A DNA stretch of 64,000 bases from Utricularia gibba (lineage: Eukaryota; Plantae; Magnoliophyta), in the NCBI GenBank assembly GCA_002189035.1, contig NEEC01000008.1, positions 248,001-312,000 on the forward strand. The letters are read 5' to 3'. The notes under the pieces are model-generated. The model searched no databases. It saw only the letters and a list, made by a program, of their open reading frames with translations, and was not told the DNA's origin. A program made the translations under genes and the position numbers. Numbering within the stretch: position 1 is the first letter of the stretch; each line of letters begins with the position of its first letter. Of this stretch, positions 12,491 through 64,000 are shown one piece after another.

Positions 12491-13800
12491 TCAGCATTCC
12501 ATGACAGCACAATTATAAACAAAGCTGCTGGAACGTTTCTGGCCGAGCAACTCCCACTGTGGAGGGCTGCCGCCGTCCGAAGGAGTCCAAGAATTCACTT
12601 CTATGTAACCTTCACCCGAGTTTCGAGGCCCCCCACTACGATAAGGCGCTGACCACAGGCTCTGAAGGCTAATCCCCAGCCGTTCATCGAGTTTGCTCGT
12701 TCAGGAAGCCGTCCAACCGTTGTCCAAACGCCTTCTTGTTTCATGTATTTTCTAACCTCCATGTAAGCATAATCTGCAGCGTACAATTCATTATGTACAA
12801 CGGCAATCAAAGGAGGAGCTTCAGATGTAGGAGGAGCCTCATTCCCCCTTGCTGTGGCAGCAACTCGTGAGGGTGACATGTTTGGTATTTCCTGCCATGT
12901 TTGAGTTTCCAAGTCATATTCCTCTCCGCATGTGAGAAGCTTAGAGTCGACTCCTCCGATTCCTCCGACAACATAGAACTTGCCATCCATGAATACTCCA
13001 GAGCACATTTTCCTTGGTTTATTCATGGGTGGAAGCATAGTCCAAGTTCCTTCTTCTGAATTGTATAGCTCTGCAGAACTTAAAATGTTTCCTTGTGAAT
13101 CACAGCCACCTGCTAATATTGCTATTTCCCTGAGACTCGCAGATCCGAATAGGCATCTAGGCTCATTCATGGCCATTCCCGTCATCCATGTATTTGTCAA
13201 CAAACTGTAGCGGTAAATCACATGGGACATGAGATCCCTTCCAAAAACTAGAAGCTCAGTCCCAACAGCCAAGGATTCCTTATCTGCAAATACAAAGCAG
13301 TCATTAGGTGCCATTCGTGGTAGATTCATCCATCGCCGGTGGGTTGGATCAAAAGCCTCCCACTCAAGAAGCTGGCAGGATAAATAAATCCACTGCTCCA
13401 CCATTCCACACTGGCGTCTTGCTTTGTAGACCTCACCGCTTCTAATAAGCTCTCGAAAACTCCGGTTCAGAGATGCAATCACCCCATAGTCAGCCCGAGA
13501 ACACCGGCTAACACAACTGATAGAATTGTCTCTACCAATAGCAACAATCAGCGAACTTGAATCATCACAAGAATCAGAATCCGACAGGGATATCCTATTA
13601 ATAGAAAAAGAAGTACCCATCCTATCTCCTAATTGCTTGGGGAACTTCCTCACAACATATTCTTCTTCTTCATCCTCCAAAGATCTCTTTTTGGAATGCT
13701 CCTCAGGTTTCTCAGGCAGGAAATTCATCCGCCAACCACCTTCTCGTTCACAGCTCCCACTGTTCTCTACCGAAATGAAACAAGGTCTATCCTCCAGCAT
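12491..13800 (-). CDS. F-box/kelch-repeat protein (SKIP11 type), intronless, with a 1-nt frameshift in a G6 run at 12634-12629
   Basis: The ORF 13800-12601 has an F-box-like region (GRDNSISC...ASLNRSFR) and kelch repeats (KESLAVGTELLVFG, PRCLFGSAS, RKMCSGVFMDGKFYVVGG). The conserved end GGPR..IEVNSW....PQWELLG.KRSSSFVYNCAVMEC* is in the shifted frame and stops at 12493-12491. Confidence 0.88.
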
Positions 13801-41701: not shown

Positions 41702-42835
41702 GCTAGGCAAATGGTTCATGGTCGTGTTAAAGCAATATATGAGGCGTAGTTTAACAAAATAATGGGTTATTATTGCCAGCAATTGGAAGCCACTAATCCA
41801 GGTTCGATAGTTAAACTAGATTTGGTTGATGATTCTGTTGACCTAGGCCACAAACGGTTCCGAAAGTTTTACATTTGCTTGAGTTCTTGAAAAAAAGGTT
41901 TTAGGCTTGGTTGTAGAAAAAGTTTTGGCGTAGATGGATGCTTTCTGATTGAAAATGTAGAGGGCGAGCTGCTTATCGCAGTGGTTCTTGATACAAATAA
42001 TGGAGTTTATCCAACAGCTGGTTTCTATCTATTTTAAAGGAGGATATCAATATTACGGATGACAACATGCAAGAGTATGTGATCATGTCCAATCGAGATA
42101 AAGGATTAGAGTATGCTACGATGACTATTTTTTCCAATATCCACGTTCTCATTTTCTACTTTGTTATGTTTTTTCATTTTCTGTCACATTTTAACGAATG
42201 GCCCCTTGATTCCAAGTAAGGCATTTTGATAGACACATGGTCCAAAATTTGAAAGATAATGGCTATGGGGCTATGGTGATTCAAAGCATTGTATGGATTG
42301 TTGCTCGCGCAGCAACTAAACAAGCATTCAACCTCCATTTTTCTGAACTTGAGAAGGTTAGTGAAGGTGCTTATGCTTATATACGTAATATACCATGGCA
42401 TTTTGGGTTAGGTGCACATTTTCATAGGGCACCACTTGTGATATATTACTAAAGCACATGGTTGAAACCTTCAACTCAATGATTTTGCCCGCAAGAAAGT
42501 TACCTTTGGTGCCAATGTTAGAGGGGATCAGAAAGAAACTCATGAAATGCTTTGCAAAAAATCTATATGCCTGCCTAACATGGAAGACTTCAATCTGTCC
42601 TCGAATACAAATTGTCCGATTGAGAATGAACGGGTGGTGAAGATTTGTACTGTGTGGATCTTGCAAAGAAAACATGCACCTGCTGCCGGTTTCAATTAAT
42701 AGATACTAATATTATAAGTATAGTATATGGTTTCTTTTTCTAATTTGTATTTTTCTAGGCATACTCTATGAACATGCACTAGTAGCACTGAAAGCAAAAA
42801 AAGAAGCCATCCACAATTTCATAAGTCTTCACTAT

Positions 42836-44099: not shown

Positions 44100-47000
44100 A
44101 AGATCCATGTTAGCCTCCTCTAATGCTTGGATCTTCAATTATAAACGCATGATTTGTCATCAGTTTTGAGAATCAACATGAACATCAATTTTAGCGTAAA
44201 AAGGCCTAACTTGCTGCACCACTTTAGAGGGAGTCGATGAATTATTTTTTACCCCATTAGATGACTCCAAGCATTAGGAACTCTAGAAAAAATATAATTC
44301 TCCAAGTCGGGTTTGTTAAAATGGCTGGATCAATCTTTTAAAGTCCATGGGTTTGTAACGGAGAGGATCAAAATAACGCAAGAATATGATAAAAAGGATT
44401 CAATTGATTCTACAGTAAAAAGAGGGACTAAATAAAATCCCTTCCCAATAATTGAGGATCAATTTGGTGATTTCTCCAATTTCCATAGGAATCTCATAAA
44501 CATGTTACAATCTTAATTTTCTTCTTCAATGATATTGTGAAATGATTTGTGTGAGAAACTCTGAAACACTTTATAATGCTAAACAATGCACTAACATTAA
44601 ATGGATATCCATCATCTTCACATAACCTCATAAATGTAATAATATTACTGATGGAAGTCACTGTTATGTAAGATAGTGGAAGATGCACCAAATGAAGTAC
44701 AAATTTTTGAAAAATGGCTGAATTTTTAAATGGATTATTTTAACCCATATTTAAAATATTTTGTGCTAACTACAAAAGCACGAAAGCCAATATGTTGTAG
44801 TGGTTCATCTATAATATGTTTATATCGTATTTGTCTAATATTAGAAATTTCTCGAGTACTAAGTATCTTTATCAGTTCTTATCTTCAAAAGTCATTTATC
44901 ATTATGAATCTTAGTGGAAGTAGGAAAATCAAAACATGTAGATAATATAAAAAATAAACAAATCTCCTTGAATTTTGTTGATAGAATTTGCAATCTTGTA
45001 GATTAAAAAAAATTTATCTCATGAAATCTTCACATACATTGGGAAGAAGAGAAAGGAGATTTTGATTAAGGACATTGGAAAAAACAGTGATAGAGAAGAA
45101 GCAGAATTAGAGTTTAGAATAAAAGTTGGTATATATTAAATTAGGAAAGGTATGTATTTAATATTTTGAAATATTTAATATTTTCAAAAAAAAATTAAAA
45201 AATTAATTATAGCTTATATTCAATAATGTAATTATGATATATTTTTGACAAGTAGGATCAATGTTAAACATTCGGGCATGCTTTCACACATGAAGTTACA
45301 ACTAAATGTGATACAAAATTATGATATGTAATTCAAAGTTTTGAGTACGTACCTAATGTGCATTGGAGCATGTGTCTTGACTAACCATCAATTAAAACCT
45401 TCCTTTGAATATGATCAACTACTTTTATTGATGTATGAGGAATTGATTTATCTCCATTTGAATATAGTTTGTGAGGTTGGTCTGCAAAAACATTATGTCG
45501 TCGAGTTGATCACGTGTCTTTATAGTTTATTAGAGAAGTAGTACTCACATTGAGCAAATATAATTATATTTGTTGTTATGCACCTAGAGTCAACAATACG
45601 TGTGTCAACAAGCATAAGGGTAAATGTCTTGTTTTCTTCAATATCCCATTCATGCCTTTAATTTGATTCGTTGTTAAGATGCTGGACTTACAGAGTATTC
45701 AATGCTGTAGATTGAATTTCACATTAATATGCAAATATTGGTGATTATACCTTGCTTGTCCATCATGTGCTAGAGTATATGTCTCAAATTGTAACTTATT
45801 TAGGTAATCTCTTCCTTCCGGATGTATTTTATAAATTTTTTCTATTTACAACTTCCATTTAGGTTTTGATGTGGCACACGTGGCTTTTGTAAATTGTTCA
45901 TGCATACGTGAAACTTTTCTATATTTTTTGAGGAAATTAGAACACAAATGACGTATAGAGAGGCAACGATTTGATATAATGCAATATGCTTTGTCCAGAT
46001 GTTAATCTAATAATTAAATAAACTAATGCCAAGAATCATCATTCTCACTATCAATAACCACATAGGCAAGAGGTAAAAAGATATCAAAAACATCTAATAT
46101 TACTGCAATTAGTAATTTGTGGAGAGTATCGTGAACACGTATTTGAATGTTTTTATTTCATATACATATGGCTATCTTTGTTGATATTCCACAATTGTAT
46201 GTGGATTTCTAAATTGTAGAGGTAGAAGGAGTAAAAATGACTCTCATGTCCTGTAAATAATTTTTTAGCATTTTGTCTTTTGTACTAAAGTCAACTTTGA
46301 GAAAAGATTTTGCACTCTACAATATATGATGGCATGATATTTTGATGATAAAGTGGTTTTGACTCAAGACTTCTACAAGTATGTGATTTTTTATTTATAG
46401 ATGTTTTTCACACTATATCACAAATGAAATATACATAATATATCATTTATTTGCATCCCCTTGTTCTTTCATCTTGTTCTTCAAAAATTATTTTCATCGA
46501 ATAAATATTAGAAATAGTCATTTTTTAAAAAATATTTTTAATTCATTTTCTTAATAAAAATACATTTATAAAATTTATTTTGTTTCAAACTTCATCCAAT
46601 AATAGTAGGTTGCTTCGTACCGTAAATTTGGGGATCTCTAGTATTGGGTCATCATCAAGGGCGGACCCGGGGGGAGAGGGGTGATGGAGGCCATCGTCCC
46701 CCAGAAAAAAAATTCATGTTATTTTTTAAAAAAAATTAGGAATTTGAACGATTATCATTGAGTTTTGCCCCTCTTTTCATGTTTCTCTCGCTCCTCTTTC
46801 ATGTTTCGCCCCCTTCCATAAAATCCTGGGTCCACCACTGGTCATGATACACATCCCCAATCACTTCAATAGCTCTCCAATGCAACATTATTGAGAAATT
46901 TTGGAGTATTAAACACACCTTTCCAATCACGTAACTTCGATATTGCTGATTTATCTTGATTTTTTATTATTATGACTACAATACCCTTTGCTCTATGTAA
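44100..47000 (-). mobile_element. Heavily decayed MULE transposase gene 2 (same lineage as the 57.7-60.5 kb transposase)
   Basis: Minus strand HKLLIAVILD..LPLAYVVIDSENDDSWH*F (about 46120-46022) and IISNRCLSI (about 45980) parallel HKMLIAVTV..LPLAFAIVDEETDASWLWF and LISDRCDSI in the younger element. SHTCRS..HQNIMPSYI (about 46385-46330) parallels PHTCKR..HRNINHDYI. Confidence 0.65.
46656..46840. mobile_element. hAT-family MITE, 185 bp
   Basis: TIRs CAAGGGCGGACCCGGG and (reverse complement) CAGTGGTGGACCCAGG; 8-bp TSD GTCATCAT (46648-46655) and GTCATGAT (46841-46848) with one mismatch. Confidence 0.8.
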
Positions 47001-52182: not shown

Positions 52183-54037
52183 ATGAGGGACAAGATTTGC
52201 AAGCTAGTGAAGAATGGATTCTACAAGGAAGCAATTTCTCTGTTCACCAAGCGTCACGCCTTCGCTATTGCTCCAACAGATTTCACTTTTCCATACATCC
52301 TTAAGGCCTGCTCTGAGCTGAAAGCAGTCACCTATGGCGAAATGCTCCACGCCCACATATTGAAATCCGGATATACGAGTACTCATACTGTTACCGATTT
52401 GACTAACATGTACATGAAGATTGGTTGGGTCGATAGTGCAGCCAAGTTGTTCGATGAAATTCCTATTCCAGCATTATCTATTCTTAACGTTGTTATTTCT
52501 GGGTTTGGGCAAAATGGTTTTTTCGAAGAGGGTTTTTCAATATTTAAAGTGTTCTGTGTGCCTAATGCTCGGGTTGACTCAGTTACAATAGCTGGAGTGA
52601 CATCTAGTTGCAGGAATGTAGTCATTGGCGTACAGGTTCATTGTCTAGCGGTTAAGATTGGTGTGGAAAAGGAACACTTTGCGGCAACATCGTTGATGAC
52701 CATGTACTTGAGTTGTGCAGAACTGAATTCTGCTGAAAGATTTTTTGATTTGATTGAAAACAAGGGTGTAATCTGCTATGCTGCATACTTGTCAGGACTC
52801 GCGCAGAATGGAGTTGTTGAGATAGTAATACGGGTTTTTCGGGAAATGCTGGGATTGTTACATGAGCGGCCTACTGGAGTGACAGTTATAGCTGCCCTCT
52901 CTGCTTGTGGTAATGGAAAGCTTATTCGGTTTGGTAGGCAGCTTCATGCGCTTATAATAAAACTGGAGTTGGAATCCCATACCAAAGTAGGGACTAGTCT
53001 TGTGGATATGTATTCAAAATGTGGATCTTGCCAATGTTCCATTGCTGCATTTAGAGAAATGGAAGGCACCAAGAACCTTATAACGTGGAATTCAATGATT
53101 GCAGGATTACTCCGGAATGGTCAACATGAGAATGCTATCATTCTTTTTGCTGAGTTAGAATGTGGAGGGCTGAAACCTGATATTGTTACATGGAATTCTT
53201 TAATTAGCGTTTTTTTCGAGCTTAGGAAAAGCTGAAGAAGCCCTGCTCTTTTTCAGAAAGATGCTTGCATGTGATGTAAATCCAAATGAAAAATGTATTA
53301 CTAGTTTGTTAGCTGTTTGTTCATCATGTTCCCTGGAAAAGTTTGGAAGGCAAATTCATGCATATTCTGCAAGAACAGGATTCATTGATGACCAAATTTT
53401 GGGTACGGCTATTATTGACATGTACATGAAATCCGGGCAACCTTCGTTAGCATTTAATGTTTTCAACCAGTTTCATATGAAGCCAAATGATCCAGCATTC
53501 TGGAATGCGATGATTTCTGGGTACAGTAAAAATGGGCTAAGTGATGCTGCTTTTGGTATTTTCGACCAAATGGTAGCACAGAAAATCATACCAAATTCAA
53601 TTACTCTCAGTTGCCTATTGTCCCTCTGCAGTCACACTGGTCAGCTAGAGAAGGGTTTTGAGATTTTCAGGTTATTGACAGTAAAATATGGTTTGGATCC
53701 AACTCCAAACCATATGAGTATATTGATTGACCTTCTCAGTCGTGTTGGTCGTCTAGACGAGGCTTTTGATCTTCTTAAGGCAGAAGATAAAAATTCTTCT
53801 GTCACAGGCTTGGCTTGTCTGCTTGATGCTGCTAAGGGTCATTTAGAACCCAAGCTAGGAGAGGAAATGAGCCAAAGAATGTTAGACTTGCAGCCTGAAA
53901 ACCCTATCCCTTTTGTGATTTTGTCCAACATTTATGCAGGTCTAGAGAAGTGGAAAGATGTACATATGGTAAGACAGTTGATGGATGAGAAGGGACTTAA
54001 AAAACTCCCTGGCGTCAGTTCCGTGAGAGTAGCTTAA
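52183..54037 (+). CDS. PLS-class (E subgroup) pentatricopeptide repeat protein, intronless, resembling Arabidopsis At2g02750, with a +1 frameshift in a T7 run at 53210-53216
   Basis: P/L/S motifs (FTFPYILKAC, VGTSLVDMYSKCG, NLITWNSMIAG, PDIVTWNSLIS) and an E domain (PFVILSNIYAG..W.DV..VRQLM..KGLKKLPG). The ORFs 52183-53235 and 53261-54037 join if one T is removed (SVFSSLGKAEEALLFFRKML). Confidence 0.88.
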
Positions 54038-56220: not shown

Positions 56221-57154
56221 TGTCGTATGAAGTATGATAGTTTATAATATATTTACATTCATCATACTGATTGTGTGTAAATTTATACATAGACTTAAAA
56301 CATTAGCAAAAATCATTATTAATTACATTATTTTTTAATATTTCTATTGCTCCACTTATCAAGTACTGTGCGGGTCATTTTCAAAACCACCAACTGCAAA
56401 AAAACCCAATTCCAAAACCATCCACTGTGTGTACTATGTGTACAAAACCACTCATCCTAACTTTTTCTTTTCTTTTTTGAATTACTTTTATTCTTAGATA
56501 TCGTACACATTTAAATATAATAAATATATACATTTAAATAATATAATTTCTGTTATAAATATGTCAAATTTTTTTAAAACACTGTTTATGTCACTCAAAC
56601 TAACTAATTAATAAAATATTTTTAAAAAATTACTCATAATTATAATTGTATAATTTTAAAATAAAAATACACATATTTATATTTCTAATATTCCTCAAGA
56701 TATTTACGTTTTTTTGAAATTACAAATATAATACATATATATTATATGTATCATTATTTTTGAACATATAATAATAGAAATCATATTTTTCTATATAATA
56801 TAATGATATTTTGATTAATGAAAACAAATTTTACATATATTAATTTATATTGAAATTGATGCCTACAATATAAATTATAGTGTCCGAGATTTTTAAGCAC
56901 CATAATAATCTATTACAGTTACTAGAAATGTACAACAATTTTGAAATAATAACAAAATATAATATTTATATTTATAATATTCCACAAGATATTCGATTTT
57001 TTTGAAAAAATACAAAGATATATCTTATATGAATCATTATAATACATATATATCTATAATGTGTCGATTTTTTTTATAATACAATAATAGAATTCATGTT
57101 TTACTATATACTAATTGTATTTCAATTTTACATATGTTACCTTATGTTGATCAA

Positions 57155-57705
57155 TCACTACAATTCATCAATTACAGTTACCAGAAATGAAAGTAATATA
57201 AGTAATACGATAATTCTCTATTTTTTACAATCACTGTAATCATGAATTACAGTTATCAGAAATAAAAGTAATATAAGCAAAACGAAAATTGTTTATTTTT
57301 CCAATCCTCGTAATCATCAATTACAGTTACCCAAAATGAAAGTAATATAAAGAAAATGACAATTACTTATTTCTGGCGATCACTGTAATTCATCAATTAT
57401 AGTTGCTAGAAATGAAAGTAATATAAGCAAAATGAAAATTGTTTATTTTTTCCAATCCTTGTAATCATCAATTACAGTTATTAGAAATGAATGTAACCAA
57501 AACGAAAATTGTTTATTTTTACCAATCCCTGTAATCATCAATTACAGTTACCAGAAATGAATGTAACCAAAACGAAAATTGTTTATTTTTGCCAATCCCT
57601 ATAATCATCAATTACAGTTACGAAAAACAAAAGTAATATAAAGGAAACGATAATTGCATAATTATGCTGATCACTGTAATTCATCAATTACAGTTGCCAG
57701 GAAAA
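57155..57705. repeat. Tandem array A, about 8 units of 70-76 bp
   Basis: (G/A)TAATCATCAATTACAGTTA recurs at 57461, 57531 and 57601 (period 70). Units contain the hairpin (A)CTGTAAT(T)-CATC-AATTACAG(T). Confidence 0.92.
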
Positions 57706-57735
57706 TAATATTTTACATATTGATAATATTAATCC

Positions 57736-60462
57736 TTATTTCATAAACGACCCAAAAAATTTACGCATATGTGACTTCTGCTTCCTAGGCTGTTGAGTAG
57801 ACAAGCTTGGAAGATCAAACATAGTGTTCATACCTTGAGGTCGTTCTTGAATAGATGACCGTGGTTGTTGAGAAACACCTTCGAAATCATGGAGATATGG
57901 TACATCAATAGATACCCGATGGCTGTGAGGTGGACTATGTGCAGGTGAAGCTGTATCTTGTGAAAATCTTGGTCTCCCACTATGTCTACTTCTCCTTCCT
58001 ATGCTCCTTCCCCTATCCATATTCATCCTATATCGCGAACTACGTGTACGACCATGTCTAATCATCTTTTTACGTGTAGGATCATGAATGAGGGGCATTG
58101 TTGCTGACCAATGTCTCTCTGCTTGAAGTGGATGAAATTGGACCTTGTATGCTTTCAACAAATGTTGTTGTAAGTGTATGGGATCCACATATTGTCTTGA
58201 ATCAACTCCAAGTCTCTTGCACGCTTGAAATAAGCATGTCTTTTATATTGAATAAATGAAAATTATTAAATCATAGTCTAACCTTTTGTGCATGTGAGCA
58301 TGGTATTCCATAATTTTGCCCTCCTTGATGCGCACCACACAAATGTTATCTTTCCCATTTGCTTTCCTTCGGTTGATTACATGAACTATCATTTTGTAGC
58401 GATCATAAATCTCTACTCTTGAATAAGGATGAGACTTGTCCCAATGATCAAACAATCGTTGTGCTTGTGTCGAAAGGACTTGATTCTTCCTTTGTGGCCT
58501 CTAGTGCCAACTCCAAACCTTCTGAAATATACTTTTTGCATCGAGCAAATGTAGCCTGCATGTTATTACATTCAAAATTTTCGGTAAATTTAAAACACAA
58601 AACACAAATTAATCATACTTGAGCCAATGCCGTAAGTGGGAGATGTCGTGCTCCTTTCAAAACACCGTTCATTCCTTCAACTTGATTGGTAGTCATTGTT
58701 CCATATCTTCGGCCACCATCGTGAGATATTGTCCAAGCCTCGGAGTAACATTCATTAAGTAGTTCCAAGCCACAATATTTATCATTCTAAGCTCTTCCAT
58801 ATAATCATAGAATTTCTCCATGTACCCGGTGAATGATGCTTTAAGGAAAAACGTTCGAACCGGCTCAGATTTAAATCTGTCAAAGAAATTTGCTCGAAAA
58901 TGGCGAAAGCGATAGCGATGACATCCTCCAAATTCTTCACTGAATGCTGTAACTCTGATTGCTGCCTTTCGAATAGAGTCACATCTATCAGAAATCAAGC
59001 ACGTGGGTTTTCCCAAAGTAATGTAAGTTCCCACTAACTCTAGAAACCATAGCCAAGAAGCATCAGTTTCTTCATCTACTATGGCAAAGGCAAGCGGCAA
59101 AATCTTTCCACATTGAGAGACGGTCACCGCAATGAGCATTTTGTGCCTGTATGTCGCATACAAGTGCGTTGCATCGACTGAAATAACCGGACGGGTGTGC
59201 TGGTAGGCATGTATACATGGTCCAAACGCCCAGAAGTAATAGTGCAATGTGACTCCATCTTCCTTATTCCTCCATTGGATTACGGTGCCTGGATTTTGTA
59301 AGACAACTTCATTTAAGAAAGCTGGAAGTTTCTTTACTGATTCCTCCCATGTGCCATACACCTTCTCAAAGGCCTTTCGCATTCCATACCATGCACGTTT
59401 GTACGGTACTTCATAACCAGTTCTATCCAACACAGCTGCAATAATAGTTGACACTTTGGTCCCAATGTCTGCTTCAATATATGGCTTGGCAATCTTAGAG
59501 ATATAATCATGATTGATGTTTCTGTGAATAAAGAATCCCGCCCCCTACCGCTTGCATGTGTGAGGCTCAATAAGCTTTGAGATCTTCCATTTTCCCAACC
59601 ATTTATAATGAGCTGTGCGAATCCTCCAGTGACAATTTTGAGTGTCACGTTGTTTGCAATACATCTCCAAGACTCTAGGTTCAGTGTCACCAACAGTGAA
59701 CTCCTTTCCAATTTCAATGGAAAATTCTCTAACTTGTCTTCGAAAATCTTCTTTATCTTCAAATAGATCACCTTCCTTAAATCTCGGTTCATATTGATGT
59801 GTGTATACTCCATGATTACTTGATTCTTCCTCTATATCATGTAAACCTGAGTTAGGAAACCATTCCGATTCAAAACTTGCGTTTCCTTCAAGCACATTCT
59901 CTTCGCCTTCTGAGTTTTGAGGAGTATGATCAATATCGGGAACCTCATTTTCATTAGTGAATTGTATAAATGAATCGCCATCAACATTTTGGGTTGGACC
60001 GAAATCATAATTCACATATTCATCTATAGAAAAATAGAATATCATAAAATTAAAAAAAACATATACAATTTCGAAATTTACAAGAAAGAAATAGTCATTA
60101 CCGTTGTCTCCAATTTGTGAGTGAGATTCTTCTGAAAAAAATGGGTCATATTCCACAAATAAATCCACCGGAGCAATAACATGGTTAGGTTCATGAAGAT
60201 AATCTAGGTTGCTCTGTGCCTCTAAATTCAAATACCTCGTTTCTCTAGTCACAACATCAAAAAACTGGGCTGATAATCTAAGATTGAACCTCAAAGAAGA
60301 CAATTGAACAATCTCATATAACCTTGCTTTTAATTCTTCCAATGAAATATCGGCATCTGACTAAAAAAACTGGATTGGTGCCACATTATAACTTACATAA
60401 TTCCCGTAATTAAAGATTTGACCTTCAAAGAAGACCTTGTATGAGACAGATCTGAAGACCAT
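57736..60462 (-). pseudogene. MuDR (MURA-like) transposase with introns, in-frame TAG stops at 60361 and 59545 and a frameshift near 58740
   Basis: MuDR domain FKEGDLFEDKEDFRRQVREFSI..CHWRI..PHTC; DDE core SVDATH, ISDRC and NQVEGMN; SWIM relic GIPCSHA (about 58300); C-terminal GRTRSSRYRMNMD. Probable ATG at 60462. Confidence 0.92.
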
Positions 60463-61050
60463 CCAAATAGAGAGATATGTAAGAATGAGGTTGCAAGAAG
60501 ATGAGGTTCTGAAGAAGTATGAAAGAATGGTTTTCAAAACCCTTTCAATTTGAACAATTCGGTCATGTAATTGGGGCATGTGAGTCCAAAACATGGGGAC
60601 ACATGTCAGTAGACTTTATTGATCTTGGAACATGTAGCTGTCGATGTTGTCGGCTGATAATGGAATATAGGCGGTACACCGCAATGGAGAAACTAGTGAG
60701 CAGCCAAAGATATAATCAAAATTACACAAATTAATAAAGATTTAGTATGTTTAACAACCTAAAAACGTGTGATTAAGTGTATGTGTATGATGCAATAGAG
60801 AGTAAGTGTATACTTTTCCTGTTTTTATAGTAAAAAAAGTCGAAATCGAAGAATTTTTCACAATGAAACACATTCTCATTACTGCATCTAAAACACTTCA
60901 TATACATTCATTTCACATTTTTTTGAATCTTATTCATGTATGTAACAAAAATTGTAATAAGTTGCAAATGATATGTAATTCATAACTATGTTCAATATAT
61001 GATCATATTTTTTAATCTCGTCTTCAAAACATTAATCAGATTGATTTATA

Positions 61051-61127
61051 GGGTTTAGGGTTTAGGGTAAACCTCGTTTACCCTAAACCCCAAATATGGT
61101 CACCATATATTCAATTACGGTGACCAT
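61051..61127. promoter_or_regulatory. Telomere-repeat (telo-box) palindrome plus a second palindrome in the divergent promoter
   Basis: GGGTTTAGGGTAAAC-CTC-GTTTACCCTAAACCC (61058-61090, perfect 15-bp arms), preceded by one more GGGTTTA; ATGGTCACC (61096-61104) and GGTGACCAT (61119-61127). Confidence 0.75.
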
Positions 61128-61559
61128 CCGTAAATCTGCTATTTTTAGCAGAATCGCGTCAATTTTACTTCGCGCGCCTTCCACTTATCACATGCTACAG
61201 TTTTTTTGATTGAATAAGTATCATTCGGTTCCCGATAAAACAAACTGACAATTTTCCTGAATTTATTAAATTGGGGTTTAAAAAAAATTAATTACTTTAA
61301 AAATTTATTTACACCATTCTTCTCTTCCTTCTTCAACCACCATATCAATCTTCACATTTCAAAGGTTTTTTCACGCAGAATAGGTATGCTTTATGTGTAA
61401 TTTTTGTTTATGTTTTTTTATATCTTAATGGTTATAGTATTGGGTTCTCTATTTCACGAGGATCTGAAAGCATACAAGATTTGTTTTATCTGCAAATTTT
61501 CGTTACTGTATTGATCAATGTTGTGAGTGAATCTAAAAAGGATGGATGGATTTCTTTTT

Positions 61560-62295
61560 TTTTTGAAATTATAGTCACCATAATGCGTTTGTTACAATGC
61601 ATTGCTCTGAAAGTATCCTCACTCTTTTTCATTTTGAAATTACGGTCACTATAATGTGCAAAGATCTCAAAGCATATGAAACGTTATTTTACTCTTGTCA
61701 CTGTATTGTGCAATAATTGCGGTGTGTGGCTCTGAAAGTATGCATATGTTTATTATATTTTGGATTTGTAGTCACTGTAATTCGTTTGATTGCATTGCGT
61801 GGATTTTCTCGTTTGATTGTGGTGTGTGGCTTTGAAAGTATGCGAAATTTATTTTATTGTGAAATTTTAGTCACTGTAATGCGATCATCGCGGTGTGTGG
61901 CTATGAAATTATGCGAAGTTTATTTTATTGTGACATTTTAGTCACTGTATCTCTTTTATTGTGGTGTGTGGCCATGAAATTATGTGAAGTTGATTTTATT
62001 GTGACATTTTAGTCACTATATCTCTTTCATTGCGATGTGTGGCTATGAAATTATGTGAAGTTTATTTTATCGTGAAATTTTAGTCATTGTAATGCCTTCA
62101 TTGCAGTGTGTGGCTATTAAATTATACAACGCTTATTTTATTATGAAATTTGAGTCACTAAAATGCTTTCATTGCAGTGTGTGGCTATGAAATTTTAGTC
62201 ACTGTAATGCTTTCATTGCGGTGTGTAGCTATAAAATTATACGAAATTTATTTTATTATGAAATTTTAGTCACTGAAATGCTTTCATTACAGTTT
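61560..62295. repeat. Tandem array B, about 9 units of about 71 bp, in the putative first intron of the accessory gene
   Basis: GA(A/C)ATTT(T/G)AGTCA(C/T)T starts at 61861, 61932, 62003, 62074 and 62145 (period 71), then 62189 (truncated) and 62260. Units contain GTGTGTGGCTATGAAATT. Donor TAG|GTATG at 61384; acceptor TGCAG at 62335. Confidence 0.92.
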
Positions 62296-62335
62296 ATGAA
62301 TTTGAAAGTATCCATTTTCATTGTTATTTATGCAG

Positions 62336-63875
62336 ACATAAACACATCAAAAAAGTTGAGGCTTCGATTCAATATTCCTACAGAATATCAATTGTGGGAT
62401 AAGGAAGAGGATGAAGAGATCGTTGGTGATATTCCAGAACGTGTTGGTCCTAGGGGTTTTGCTATCAGTACTGAGCACCTTAGATGTGACTTGTGTGTGC
62501 CAGTGGTACCATTTATGTTGCAAGTTTTGACATGCCTTCAAATTCCATTTTCACATTTGACTCCTAAGTCAGTGGCATATATATTGGCATGTGTTTACAT
62601 TGCTTGTGAGGAAAGCATTCCCCTAGAATCGTCTATTTTTTTGCTGTGAGCATGTGTAGTAGAATAAAGGATTCACCAAATTATGTGATAAAGGGTAAGT
62701 CTACAATTAAATTAGTGAAAGGTCTACGAAGTGGCTATGATAGTTGGTGGAAAGTTTTGTATGGGTTTCTCTCTTGAAGATTTACCAAATGATTTCCCAC
62801 GCACACTTCCAAATTCTCATCTTATTGGAAAACCACAAGGTATTTTATGTGTTAAACAATTTTTTATACTATGTTCTTTTATGAGAATTGTTCTGATTTT
62901 ATTGATCTAATTTACTTATGCTTACTATTAGGTGTTGAGATGTTACCAAGGGATGTCGTTGATGAATTCATTGCTTTCTTTAAAGGACAGACTAGGTCAT
63001 TGACTACAATCTTACCTTCCATCTTTAGAATACGGGGCACAGCCAAGTTTTGGTGTGGGAAAAAAAGAATTACAAAGAAGGATGATGATGTGGATGATCA
63101 AAGTGGAAATGATGCTGATAATTTACATGAAGATGTGGCGGTTGACAATGAAACAAATGATTTGGCAGCTGAAAATGAGGCGTTGAAGCAGCAACTAAAG
63201 TGATATCAATCCAGATGGCCTTCTTTCTATGAATCAAGTAGTCATATTCCAACGGTGCGGAAATTAGTAGTATTCGACGTCAATGGGATTTTTGCTGATA
63301 TTATTTTTCATTCATCATCAACCATCAAAGGGCATCCAGATAAGCGGATTTATGGGCGAGCAGGTATGGTATTTATTTAGTATTTCACACATTTGCAACA
63401 TATAGTTAGTTGCTAATTTATTGACTTGACTTTATTGCATATGTTATATTTTCAGTGTTTTTAAGACCAAATGCTAGGGAGTTTATGGAATGGTGTATGC
63501 AACATTTTGATGTTGCACTATGGTCCTCATGTGGAGGGTAATATACAAAATATTATATTATCTTTTTTATATATATGTTTTACATGTTATTCTTTTTGTA
63601 ACAGTGCACAACTAAACCAAGTCGAATATTGGATGTTTGGCGAGAAGATGTCAAATTTGGCATTCATATGGGATGGAACGAAATGCATCACCACAAACCT
63701 TCGAGTCCTCAAGAAGCCAACAAGTATAGTTTTGCTGAAAGAGTTGCGAAAAATATGGGAGGATGATGTTTTTCATGGCCGATATACACATGGTAACACC
63801 TTGTTTGTAGATGATTCATCATACAAGTCTACAACAAATCCAATAATAATTTTAGTTAAAAATTTCATAAGTTAA
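62336..63875 (+). pseudogene. MULE accessory gene: Transposase_28-like domain, acidic/coiled-coil linker and FCP1/NIF-type HAD phosphatase domain; exons about 62336-62839, 62932-63363, 63456-63537, 63605-63842+
   Basis: LRLRFNIP..VPVVPFMLQVL..IPFSHLTPKSVAYILAC..KLVKGLRSGYDSWWK. Then, in one frame across a single TGA (63201): RKLVVFDVNGIFAD..GRA|VFLRPNAREFMEWCMQHFDVALWSS..|..LAFIWDGTKC..LLKELRKIW..GNTLFVDDSSYK..NP. Three GT-AG introns with matching phases (1, 1, 2). Confidence 0.82.
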
Positions 63876-63907
63876 ATTTTATTTTTTTAGTTTAAATTAT
63901 ACTCTGA

Positions 63908-64000
63908 GAATTGTAATTGATGATTACAATGATCAGTAGAAATAGTTCATCATCGTTTTGCTTAATAAAGTATTATAAACATTTTCTCTAGTAACTGTAA
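63908..64000 (-). repeat. Inverted copy of an array A unit at the window end
   Basis: The reverse complement TTACAGTTACTAG..TAAGCAAAACGA..CTGATCATTGTAATCATCAATTACAATT matches array A (e.g. CTGATCACTGTAATTCATCAATTACAGTT at about 57667). Confidence 0.8.

Follow-up and report, generated by a model that had tools for sequence, protein, structure and literature searches.

We analysed a stretch of 64,000 nucleotides from Utricularia gibba (GenBank assembly GCA_002189035.1, contig NEEC01000008.1, positions 248,001 to 312,000 of the forward strand), referred to here as the window, and describe a transposon at its right-hand end that carries an accessory gene. From about 56.4 kb to the window end, the sequence is one decayed, 3'-truncated copy of a multi-copy family of Mutator-like elements (MULEs). 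Its MuDR-type transposase gene is accompanied by a divergently oriented, spliced gene that fuses a domain resembling TRP28 (PF04195, Transposase_28) to a NIF/FCP1-homology domain (PF03031). The original prediction for this locus, made from the letters alone, had proposed a spliced gene with an FCP1/NIF-type domain divergent from a MuDR transposase, and this central claim is borne out by the transposase domain (PF10551, E 2.7e-12), by the match of the last exon (E 1.2e-14) and by the collinearity of the exons. The features of the element are collected in Table 1.

Layout of the element and its two genes

In its architecture the family resembles an autonomous element, combining a MuDR-type transposase and a divergent second gene with inverted 70-bp arrays in subterminal position. 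The fusion gene sits between inverted copies of the 70-bp array A, and the prediction that it lies within these boundaries proved right, since the inverted copy begins at 63903, after the last NIF exon. The prediction had also allowed for a right terminal inverted repeat (TIR) lying before the NIF exons; comparison of the window with itself found no inverted match to the left end of the element 5' of these exons. Arrays A (57152-57700) and B (61556-62328) differ from one another, while every unit of both carries a short palindrome around ACTGTAAT. Both arrays are candidate protein-binding platforms. We note that the spacer between the two genes contains a telomere-repeat-like palindrome at 61054-61094 (AGGGTTTAGGGTTTAGGGT ... 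ACCCTAAACCCC), and that in one paralogous contig positions 61050-61161 are swapped for 113 other letters.

Table 1. Features of the Mutator-like element at the right-hand end of the window (window coordinates)
Feature	Coordinates	Strand	Basis or remark
Presumed left terminal region of element	56372..57151	.	No inverted partner within window
Array A, subterminal, 70-bp unit, 7.4 copies, just beyond 3' end of transposase gene	57152..57700	.	TRF; inverted partner 63903-63964
MuDR/MULE-type transposase pseudogene, with introns	57736..60440	-	PF10551, PF03108, tblastn
Spacer between divergent transposase and fusion genes	60441..61319	.	Multi-copy; bridged by paralogous contigs
Putative non-coding first exon of fusion gene	61320..61383	+	Readable GT donor at 61384, AG acceptor at 62334-62335
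Array B, 71-bp unit, inside putative 5' intron of fusion gene	61556..62328	.	TRF; self-BLAST
Coding exon 1: Transposase_28-like domain and linker; ATA at 62338; three frameshifts	62336..62849	+	PF04195, Atlas
Exon 2: acidic/coiled-coil linker, TGA 63201-63203, start of NIF domain (VVFDVNGIF), motif I Asp 63276	62932..63363	+	
Exon 3: VFLRP...WSS, NIF motif II region	63456..63537	+	PF03031 E 0.0032
Exon 4: NIF motifs III and IV (LKELRKIW, NTLFVDDSSYK), ending after NP	63605..63842	+	E 1.2e-14; Atlas NIF
Inverted copy of array A, runs off window	63903..64000	.	Begins 3' of last NIF exon

The transposase can be read almost continuously, interrupted by a single in-frame stop (near 59545) and by two frameshifts, near 58741 and 58496. 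The MULE domain PF10551 is found at 58951-59187 on the minus strand with 47.4 bits against a cut-off of 27.6, and PF03108 (DBD_Tnp_Mut) at 59608-59775 on the same strand with E 1e-4 and 22.3 bits, under its cut-off of 25. By this predicted MuDR-type transposase with a MULE catalytic domain, the element belongs to the MULEs. The nearest annotated relatives of the transposase are MULE proteins of Gesneriaceae and Paulownia (41-49% identity; 35-49% for annotated MULE proteins overall, and 35-41% by tblastn against the Gesneriaceae proteins), and a word-based homolog search with the transposase open reading frame (ORF) returned no relative above 49% identity. The protein collections searched did not include the proteome of the source genome itself, which explains the lack of close matches to the genes of the element. 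Further MULE transposase-like fragments lie elsewhere in the window, at 45591-46264 (minus strand) and 41750-42019 (plus strand), with 27-41% identity to the same annotated MULE proteins.

The model of the fusion gene was taken directly from the sequence and consists of four exons on the plus strand, divergent from the transposase. All internal introns are of the GT-AG type, and every exon junction is in frame. The boundary between transposon-type and host-type sequence falls within exon 2. For exon 1, the Atlas feature score was 0.97, and 66 of the 100 nearest clusters carried PF04195. In its published description, TRP28 is known from flowering plants only, its role is given as unknown, and a phosphatase is nowhere mentioned (PMC11963269). 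Exon 1 thus resembles the TRP28 domain encoded by antisense ORFs of Retand Ty3/gypsy retrotransposons, but it differs from these in lying in a DNA transposon, in being fused to a NIF domain and in matching the Pfam profile below its cut-off.

This copy of the fusion gene is dead: its start codon is lost, it contains three frameshifts and one stop, a splice donor is lost and the last exons are missing. The positions given for these lesions in the original prediction (ATA at 62338, slips near 62636 and at 62751-62770, TGA at 63201, ATAATA at 63843), as well as that of the motif I Asp at 63276, were all correct. The letters ATAATA at 63843 stand at the position of the GT donor of host genes and would represent that donor altered by a G>A transition.

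A NIF domain taken up with its introns

Exon 4 alone (80 residues) matched 260 proteins at E <=0.001 in a search of 1.84 billion proteins, and each of the ten best matches, when scanned, proved to be a PF03031 NIF protein. The Atlas gave the same exon a NIF score of 0.92, with NIF in 93 of the 100 nearest clusters. Spliced together, the exons give a reading of 161 residues that matches single-domain plant NIF proteins with 95-110 bits, and exons 2, 3 and 4 are collinear with them. Pfam searches on single exon pieces yielded two weak matches only (PF04195 in exon 1 and PF03031 in exon 3), exon 3 being the sole piece to reach the NIF profile, with a score below the cut-off. The Pfam check suggested in the original prediction was successful for PF10551, which lies above its cut-off, whereas PF03108, PF04195 and PF03031 remained below theirs. 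Judged from its sequence and from its collinearity over the domain, the predicted protein is a member of the NIF/FCP1-homology family. A sequence search of the PDB with exon 4 produced chance matches only and no solved structure.

Alignment of 40 plant relatives defines the host motifs as LL(V/I)LD(L/V/I)NGLLADIV, FKRPF, (V/I)WSS, KPLV.KEL.K.W and SNTLL.DDSPYKAL.NP. In the window, WSS, the KELRK lysine and the motif IV DD align with these, and the stop codon lies just upstream of the domain. The HAD fold had been described as near-complete in the original prediction; however, the conserved C-terminal ~70 residues that follow NP in host proteins (HTAIFP...SLGP.G.LR.YLE...PFGQ) are missing from the window.

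The window does not contain the DxDx(T/V) signature of active FCP1/SCP phosphatases, reading F-D-V-N-G-I instead. Across 67 aligned proteins, the motif I residues D, N and G each reach at least 90% conservation, and named members of this D-x-N-G subfamily include host genes of Erythranthe, Oldenlandia, many Asteraceae, an orchid, Sphagnum and a streptophyte alga. Since D-x-N-G is near-invariant across the host subfamily, the Asn is ancestral there and is not a change made in the transposon. The same near-invariance rules out a decay of DxD to DxN within this element, and the earlier suggestion that the DxN is special here, possibly marking a substrate trap, does not hold, as nothing about it is particular to the element. 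To our knowledge, the activity of the D-x-N-G host proteins has not been studied.

The closest known counterparts are the plant D-x-N-G "FCP1 homology domain-containing" NIF proteins, often automatically named TIM50 (e.g., KAL7094636.1 of Erythranthe tilingii), which share with the window gene the family PF03031, a motif set ((L/V)xDxNG(L/I), RP, WSS, KEL.K.W, NTL.DDS.YK) and two intron positions with their phases. In contrast to these host genes, the window gene is multi-copy and transposon-borne, and it lacks both the FCW|D intron and the C-terminal ~70 residues. What the window gene has in common with canonical FCP1/SCP1 C-terminal domain (CTD) phosphatases is NIF/HAD homology together with the motif I nucleophile Asp and the motif IV DD, whereas the general acid/base Asp and the T/V are replaced in the window's D-V-N-G-I, as they are in the whole D-x-N-G subfamily.

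No match to exon 1 or the linker was found among the 150 best NIF representatives, and no TRP28 or other transposon domain among the 67 host NIF representatives scanned. Some D-x-N-G host proteins have two NIF domains (Sphagnum, Helianthus, Bidens), 3 of the 67 scanned representatives contain DUF724, and one NIF representative matches exon 4 in 13 stretches.

For comparison, the exons of one host gene of Erythranthe tilingii and one of the orchid Apostasia were mapped. In both, introns follow GRA/GKP (in phase 1), FCW, NP and SLG, and a further intron interrupts the sixth codon after the W of WSS; phase 2 for the latter was shown in Erythranthe. The intron of the fusion gene after exon 2 (phase 1, after GRA) is at the identical place and phase, and that after exon 3 (phase 2) interrupts the same sixth codon after the W of WSS. 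In addition, exon 4 ends at NP, exactly the position of the next host intron, while the host intron after FCW is absent. Because two introns match host positions and phases, the NIF part was taken up as genomic DNA, in agreement with the DNA-level capture that the original prediction had read from the introns. The NIF part thus probably derives from a host gene of the plant D-x-N-G subfamily, with one host intron lost since.

This capture appears old. The window domain is 35-42% identical to the host proteins over the shared part, while the median among host proteins is 58%, and of the 54 columns with >=85% conservation in hosts, it keeps the host residue in 37. In a maximum-likelihood tree, the window branch measures 3.2 changes per column against a median of 0.43, about seven times as long. 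The branch is too long for a reliable placement, and we therefore claim no donor lineage. Of the two comparisons with host NIF genes proposed in the original prediction, the intron positions gave a clear match and the tree did not give a placement.

Copies in the genome and the form they point to

Logan contigs from four DNA runs, three of which bear the species label and one of which is a plant metagenome, were aligned to 58001-64000 at >=80% likeness. Other copies were seen as differences between contigs, and contig depth does not equal copy number. Between 221 and 5012 contigs per run match this segment, with likeness from above 99% to below 90%, and the whole of 58001-64000 is multi-copy with many variants, the NIF exons included. 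Position 63806, within the NIF domain, is covered by 9, 23, 3 and 7 contigs in the four runs. A one-off capture confined to this locus is ruled out by the multi-copy state of the whole stretch, and the possibility raised in the original prediction that the HAD exons occur in this copy only fails on the same data. Taken piecewise, paralogous contigs connect the transposase 5' end with the spacer, array B and the exons in the order of the window, and the spacer, array B and exon 1 are found at the same depth as the transposase.

The other copies differ from this one at its breaks. They carry an additional T behind 62635, an additional C behind 62751 and another behind 62770, and by frame arithmetic these insertions turn exon 1 into one open frame. 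In the transposase, they have an additional G at 58741 and one letter less at 58496, at the two frameshifts. Similarly, other copies encode Thr at 63688 and Leu at 63806, both host-conserved, where the window has Ile and Phe. As far as the contig sequences can be read, this copy is a decayed derivative of a form that is open in both genes at every break readable in other copies. Differences between copies over 58001-64000 are mostly C>T and G>A (e.g., 235 and 225 of about 836 sites in one run), the signature of methylated-cytosine deamination, as expected for silenced repeats.

At 63895-63905, the contigs of other copies leave the window sequence and continue with ...GGTTCTCAAATAGGTTGA..., letters without a match in the window. 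The site probably marks a deletion by which this copy lost its last exons, although these exons may also lie past the window end. Two scans of metagenome contigs found nothing.

Elsewhere in the window are host genes, namely an F-box/kelch SKIP11-like gene at 12601-13800 (minus strand), whose best matches are from Lamiales with 70-78% identity and include partial ones from Genlisea, and a PPR gene with an E motif at 52183-54037 (plus strand). The matches of the F-box/kelch gene place the plant in Lamiales and possibly in Lentibulariaceae; a look-up for exact matches to a host ORF returned no record.

Origin and possible role of the fusion gene

We favor, with a probability of about 0.68, the reading that the window holds a dead copy of an autonomous-type MULE family whose accessory gene combines a TRP28-like module with an old, intron-bearing capture of a host D-x-N-G NIF gene. 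A TRP28-like module and an acidic linker would have been joined, within one exon, to the NIF/FCP1-homology HAD domain, and the ancestor of the present copies would have had an open fusion frame retaining most of the host-conserved residues. Despite the great length of the branch, an open frame and ~70% of the invariant host columns have survived, which argues indirectly that the fusion gene was probably maintained by selection, as an accessory protein encoded by the element, until the last burst of copying.

Several observations weigh against this reading. No RNA run was listed as containing this stretch, and the joining of the two domains in transcripts is a prediction from the genomic sequence. 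Relative to the transposase and exon 1, the NIF exons reach a summed k-mer depth of 0.3-0.8, so that either some copies lack them or they are more diverged. Exon 1 matches PF04195 with E 4.6e-5 and 24.0 bits, under the cut-off of 26.2 and over profile positions 3-50 of 69, and a word-based homolog search with the TRP28 ORF found no relative. Since that search found no closer relative, we call exon 1 TRP28-like and do not regard its membership as proven. Of the element's boundaries, only the inverted subterminal arrays are within the window, the right end with the TIR and target site duplication lying beyond base 64000. In Primulina and Henckelia, the loci encoding the nearest annotated MULE proteins contain neither TRP28 nor NIF sequence within 10 kb. 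Finally, the source genome's own proteins were outside the collections searched, and a recent capture from a fast-evolving host paralog is a possible origin of the NIF part.

The alternative that survives best, unlikely but credible, is a passive passenger of the Pack-MULE type, in which the ancestor of the family picked up a TRP28 retrotransposon fragment and a host NIF fragment once, and the residues still recognizable are those left from the donor. The retained host intron positions fit such an origin, as do the pseudogene state of this copy, which is without the C-terminal third of the domain, and the lack of a listed RNA run; the host NIF genes compared also came from other genomes. Chimeras of fragments from several loci are, moreover, typical of MULE capture. 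However, at 35-42% identity and on a branch about seven times the median length, the common form of the copies is still open and keeps ~70% of the invariant host columns, both of which neutral decay would have destroyed. Pack-MULEs lack a transposase and carry captured host gene fragments. The element shares with them the capture of host DNA including introns and the chimeric joining of fragments of different origin, but its unit also contains a transposase, and the captured domain, although it diverged long ago, is open in the common form. By its predicted gene content, the element is therefore not a Pack-MULE in the sense of a non-autonomous element with fragments in place of the transposase.

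A transfer of the fusion gene from another mobile unit, e.g., of the PIF/Harbinger type, that was inserted into or recombined with a MULE, with the composite then spread by the MULE, seems quite improbable. The drop in depth from the transposase to the NIF exons and the breakpoint at 63895-63905, past which other copies continue differently, would agree with such a composite. In contrast, the gene is enclosed by inverted copies of the 70-bp array, the spacer, array B and exon 1 share the depth of the transposase, and paralogous contigs bridge the pieces in the same order. In addition, neither a Harbinger transposase nor a Myb-like ORF was found in 60.4-64 kb. That the gene is a domesticated host gene beside transposon debris is scarcely credible. 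Its splicing, its host-type introns and the promoter-like spacer, in which telomere-box-like repeats occur, would fit such a gene, but it exists in numerous variant copies that differ mainly by C>T and G>A, it is broken in this copy, and no RNA run was listed as containing it.

If the gene is indeed an accessory gene of the family, the NIF module may bind or slowly dephosphorylate a phosphoprotein, as the host D-x-N-G proteins presumably do, while the TRP28 part may provide a transposon-related interaction. Such a protein would aid the expression or transposition of the element and would not itself catalyze transposition. It is rather unlikely that the TRP28-NIF fusion functions as a new type of transposon-encoded factor, a D-x-N-G phosphatase-like module aimed by TRP28 at the host transcription or silencing machinery and maybe common to MULE and PIF/Harbinger elements. 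Counter-silencing or an action on the Pol II CTD by the fusion protein is pure speculation.

Among MULEs, known accessory genes include mudrB of MuDR, VANB and VANC of VANDAL elements and the ULP1-like protease of Kaonashi. Similar to these, the fusion gene is a second, divergently or separately transcribed gene in a transposase-bearing MULE and is present across the copies of its family. Its domain content (TRP28-like and NIF) is unrelated to theirs, and it is known here from sequence alone. Our literature searches found no paper describing a NIF, FCP1 or CTD phosphatase domain borne by a MULE or another transposon, in keeping with the view of the original prediction that a MULE-borne FCP1-like domain is undescribed.

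Few accessory proteins of transposons are understood; those that are, such as VANC and MURB, showed how mobile elements evade or use host silencing. As this copy is a dead pseudogene, the value of the finding rests with the family, in which a phosphatase-like domain of a conserved host subfamily and TRP28, both unstudied, occur together in an open frame and thereby offer a handle on both. If the gene is a mere passenger, the family still illustrates clearly an old capture, introns included, by a MULE of the autonomous kind; if the favored reading is true, it would represent a new class of candidate host-manipulation gene.

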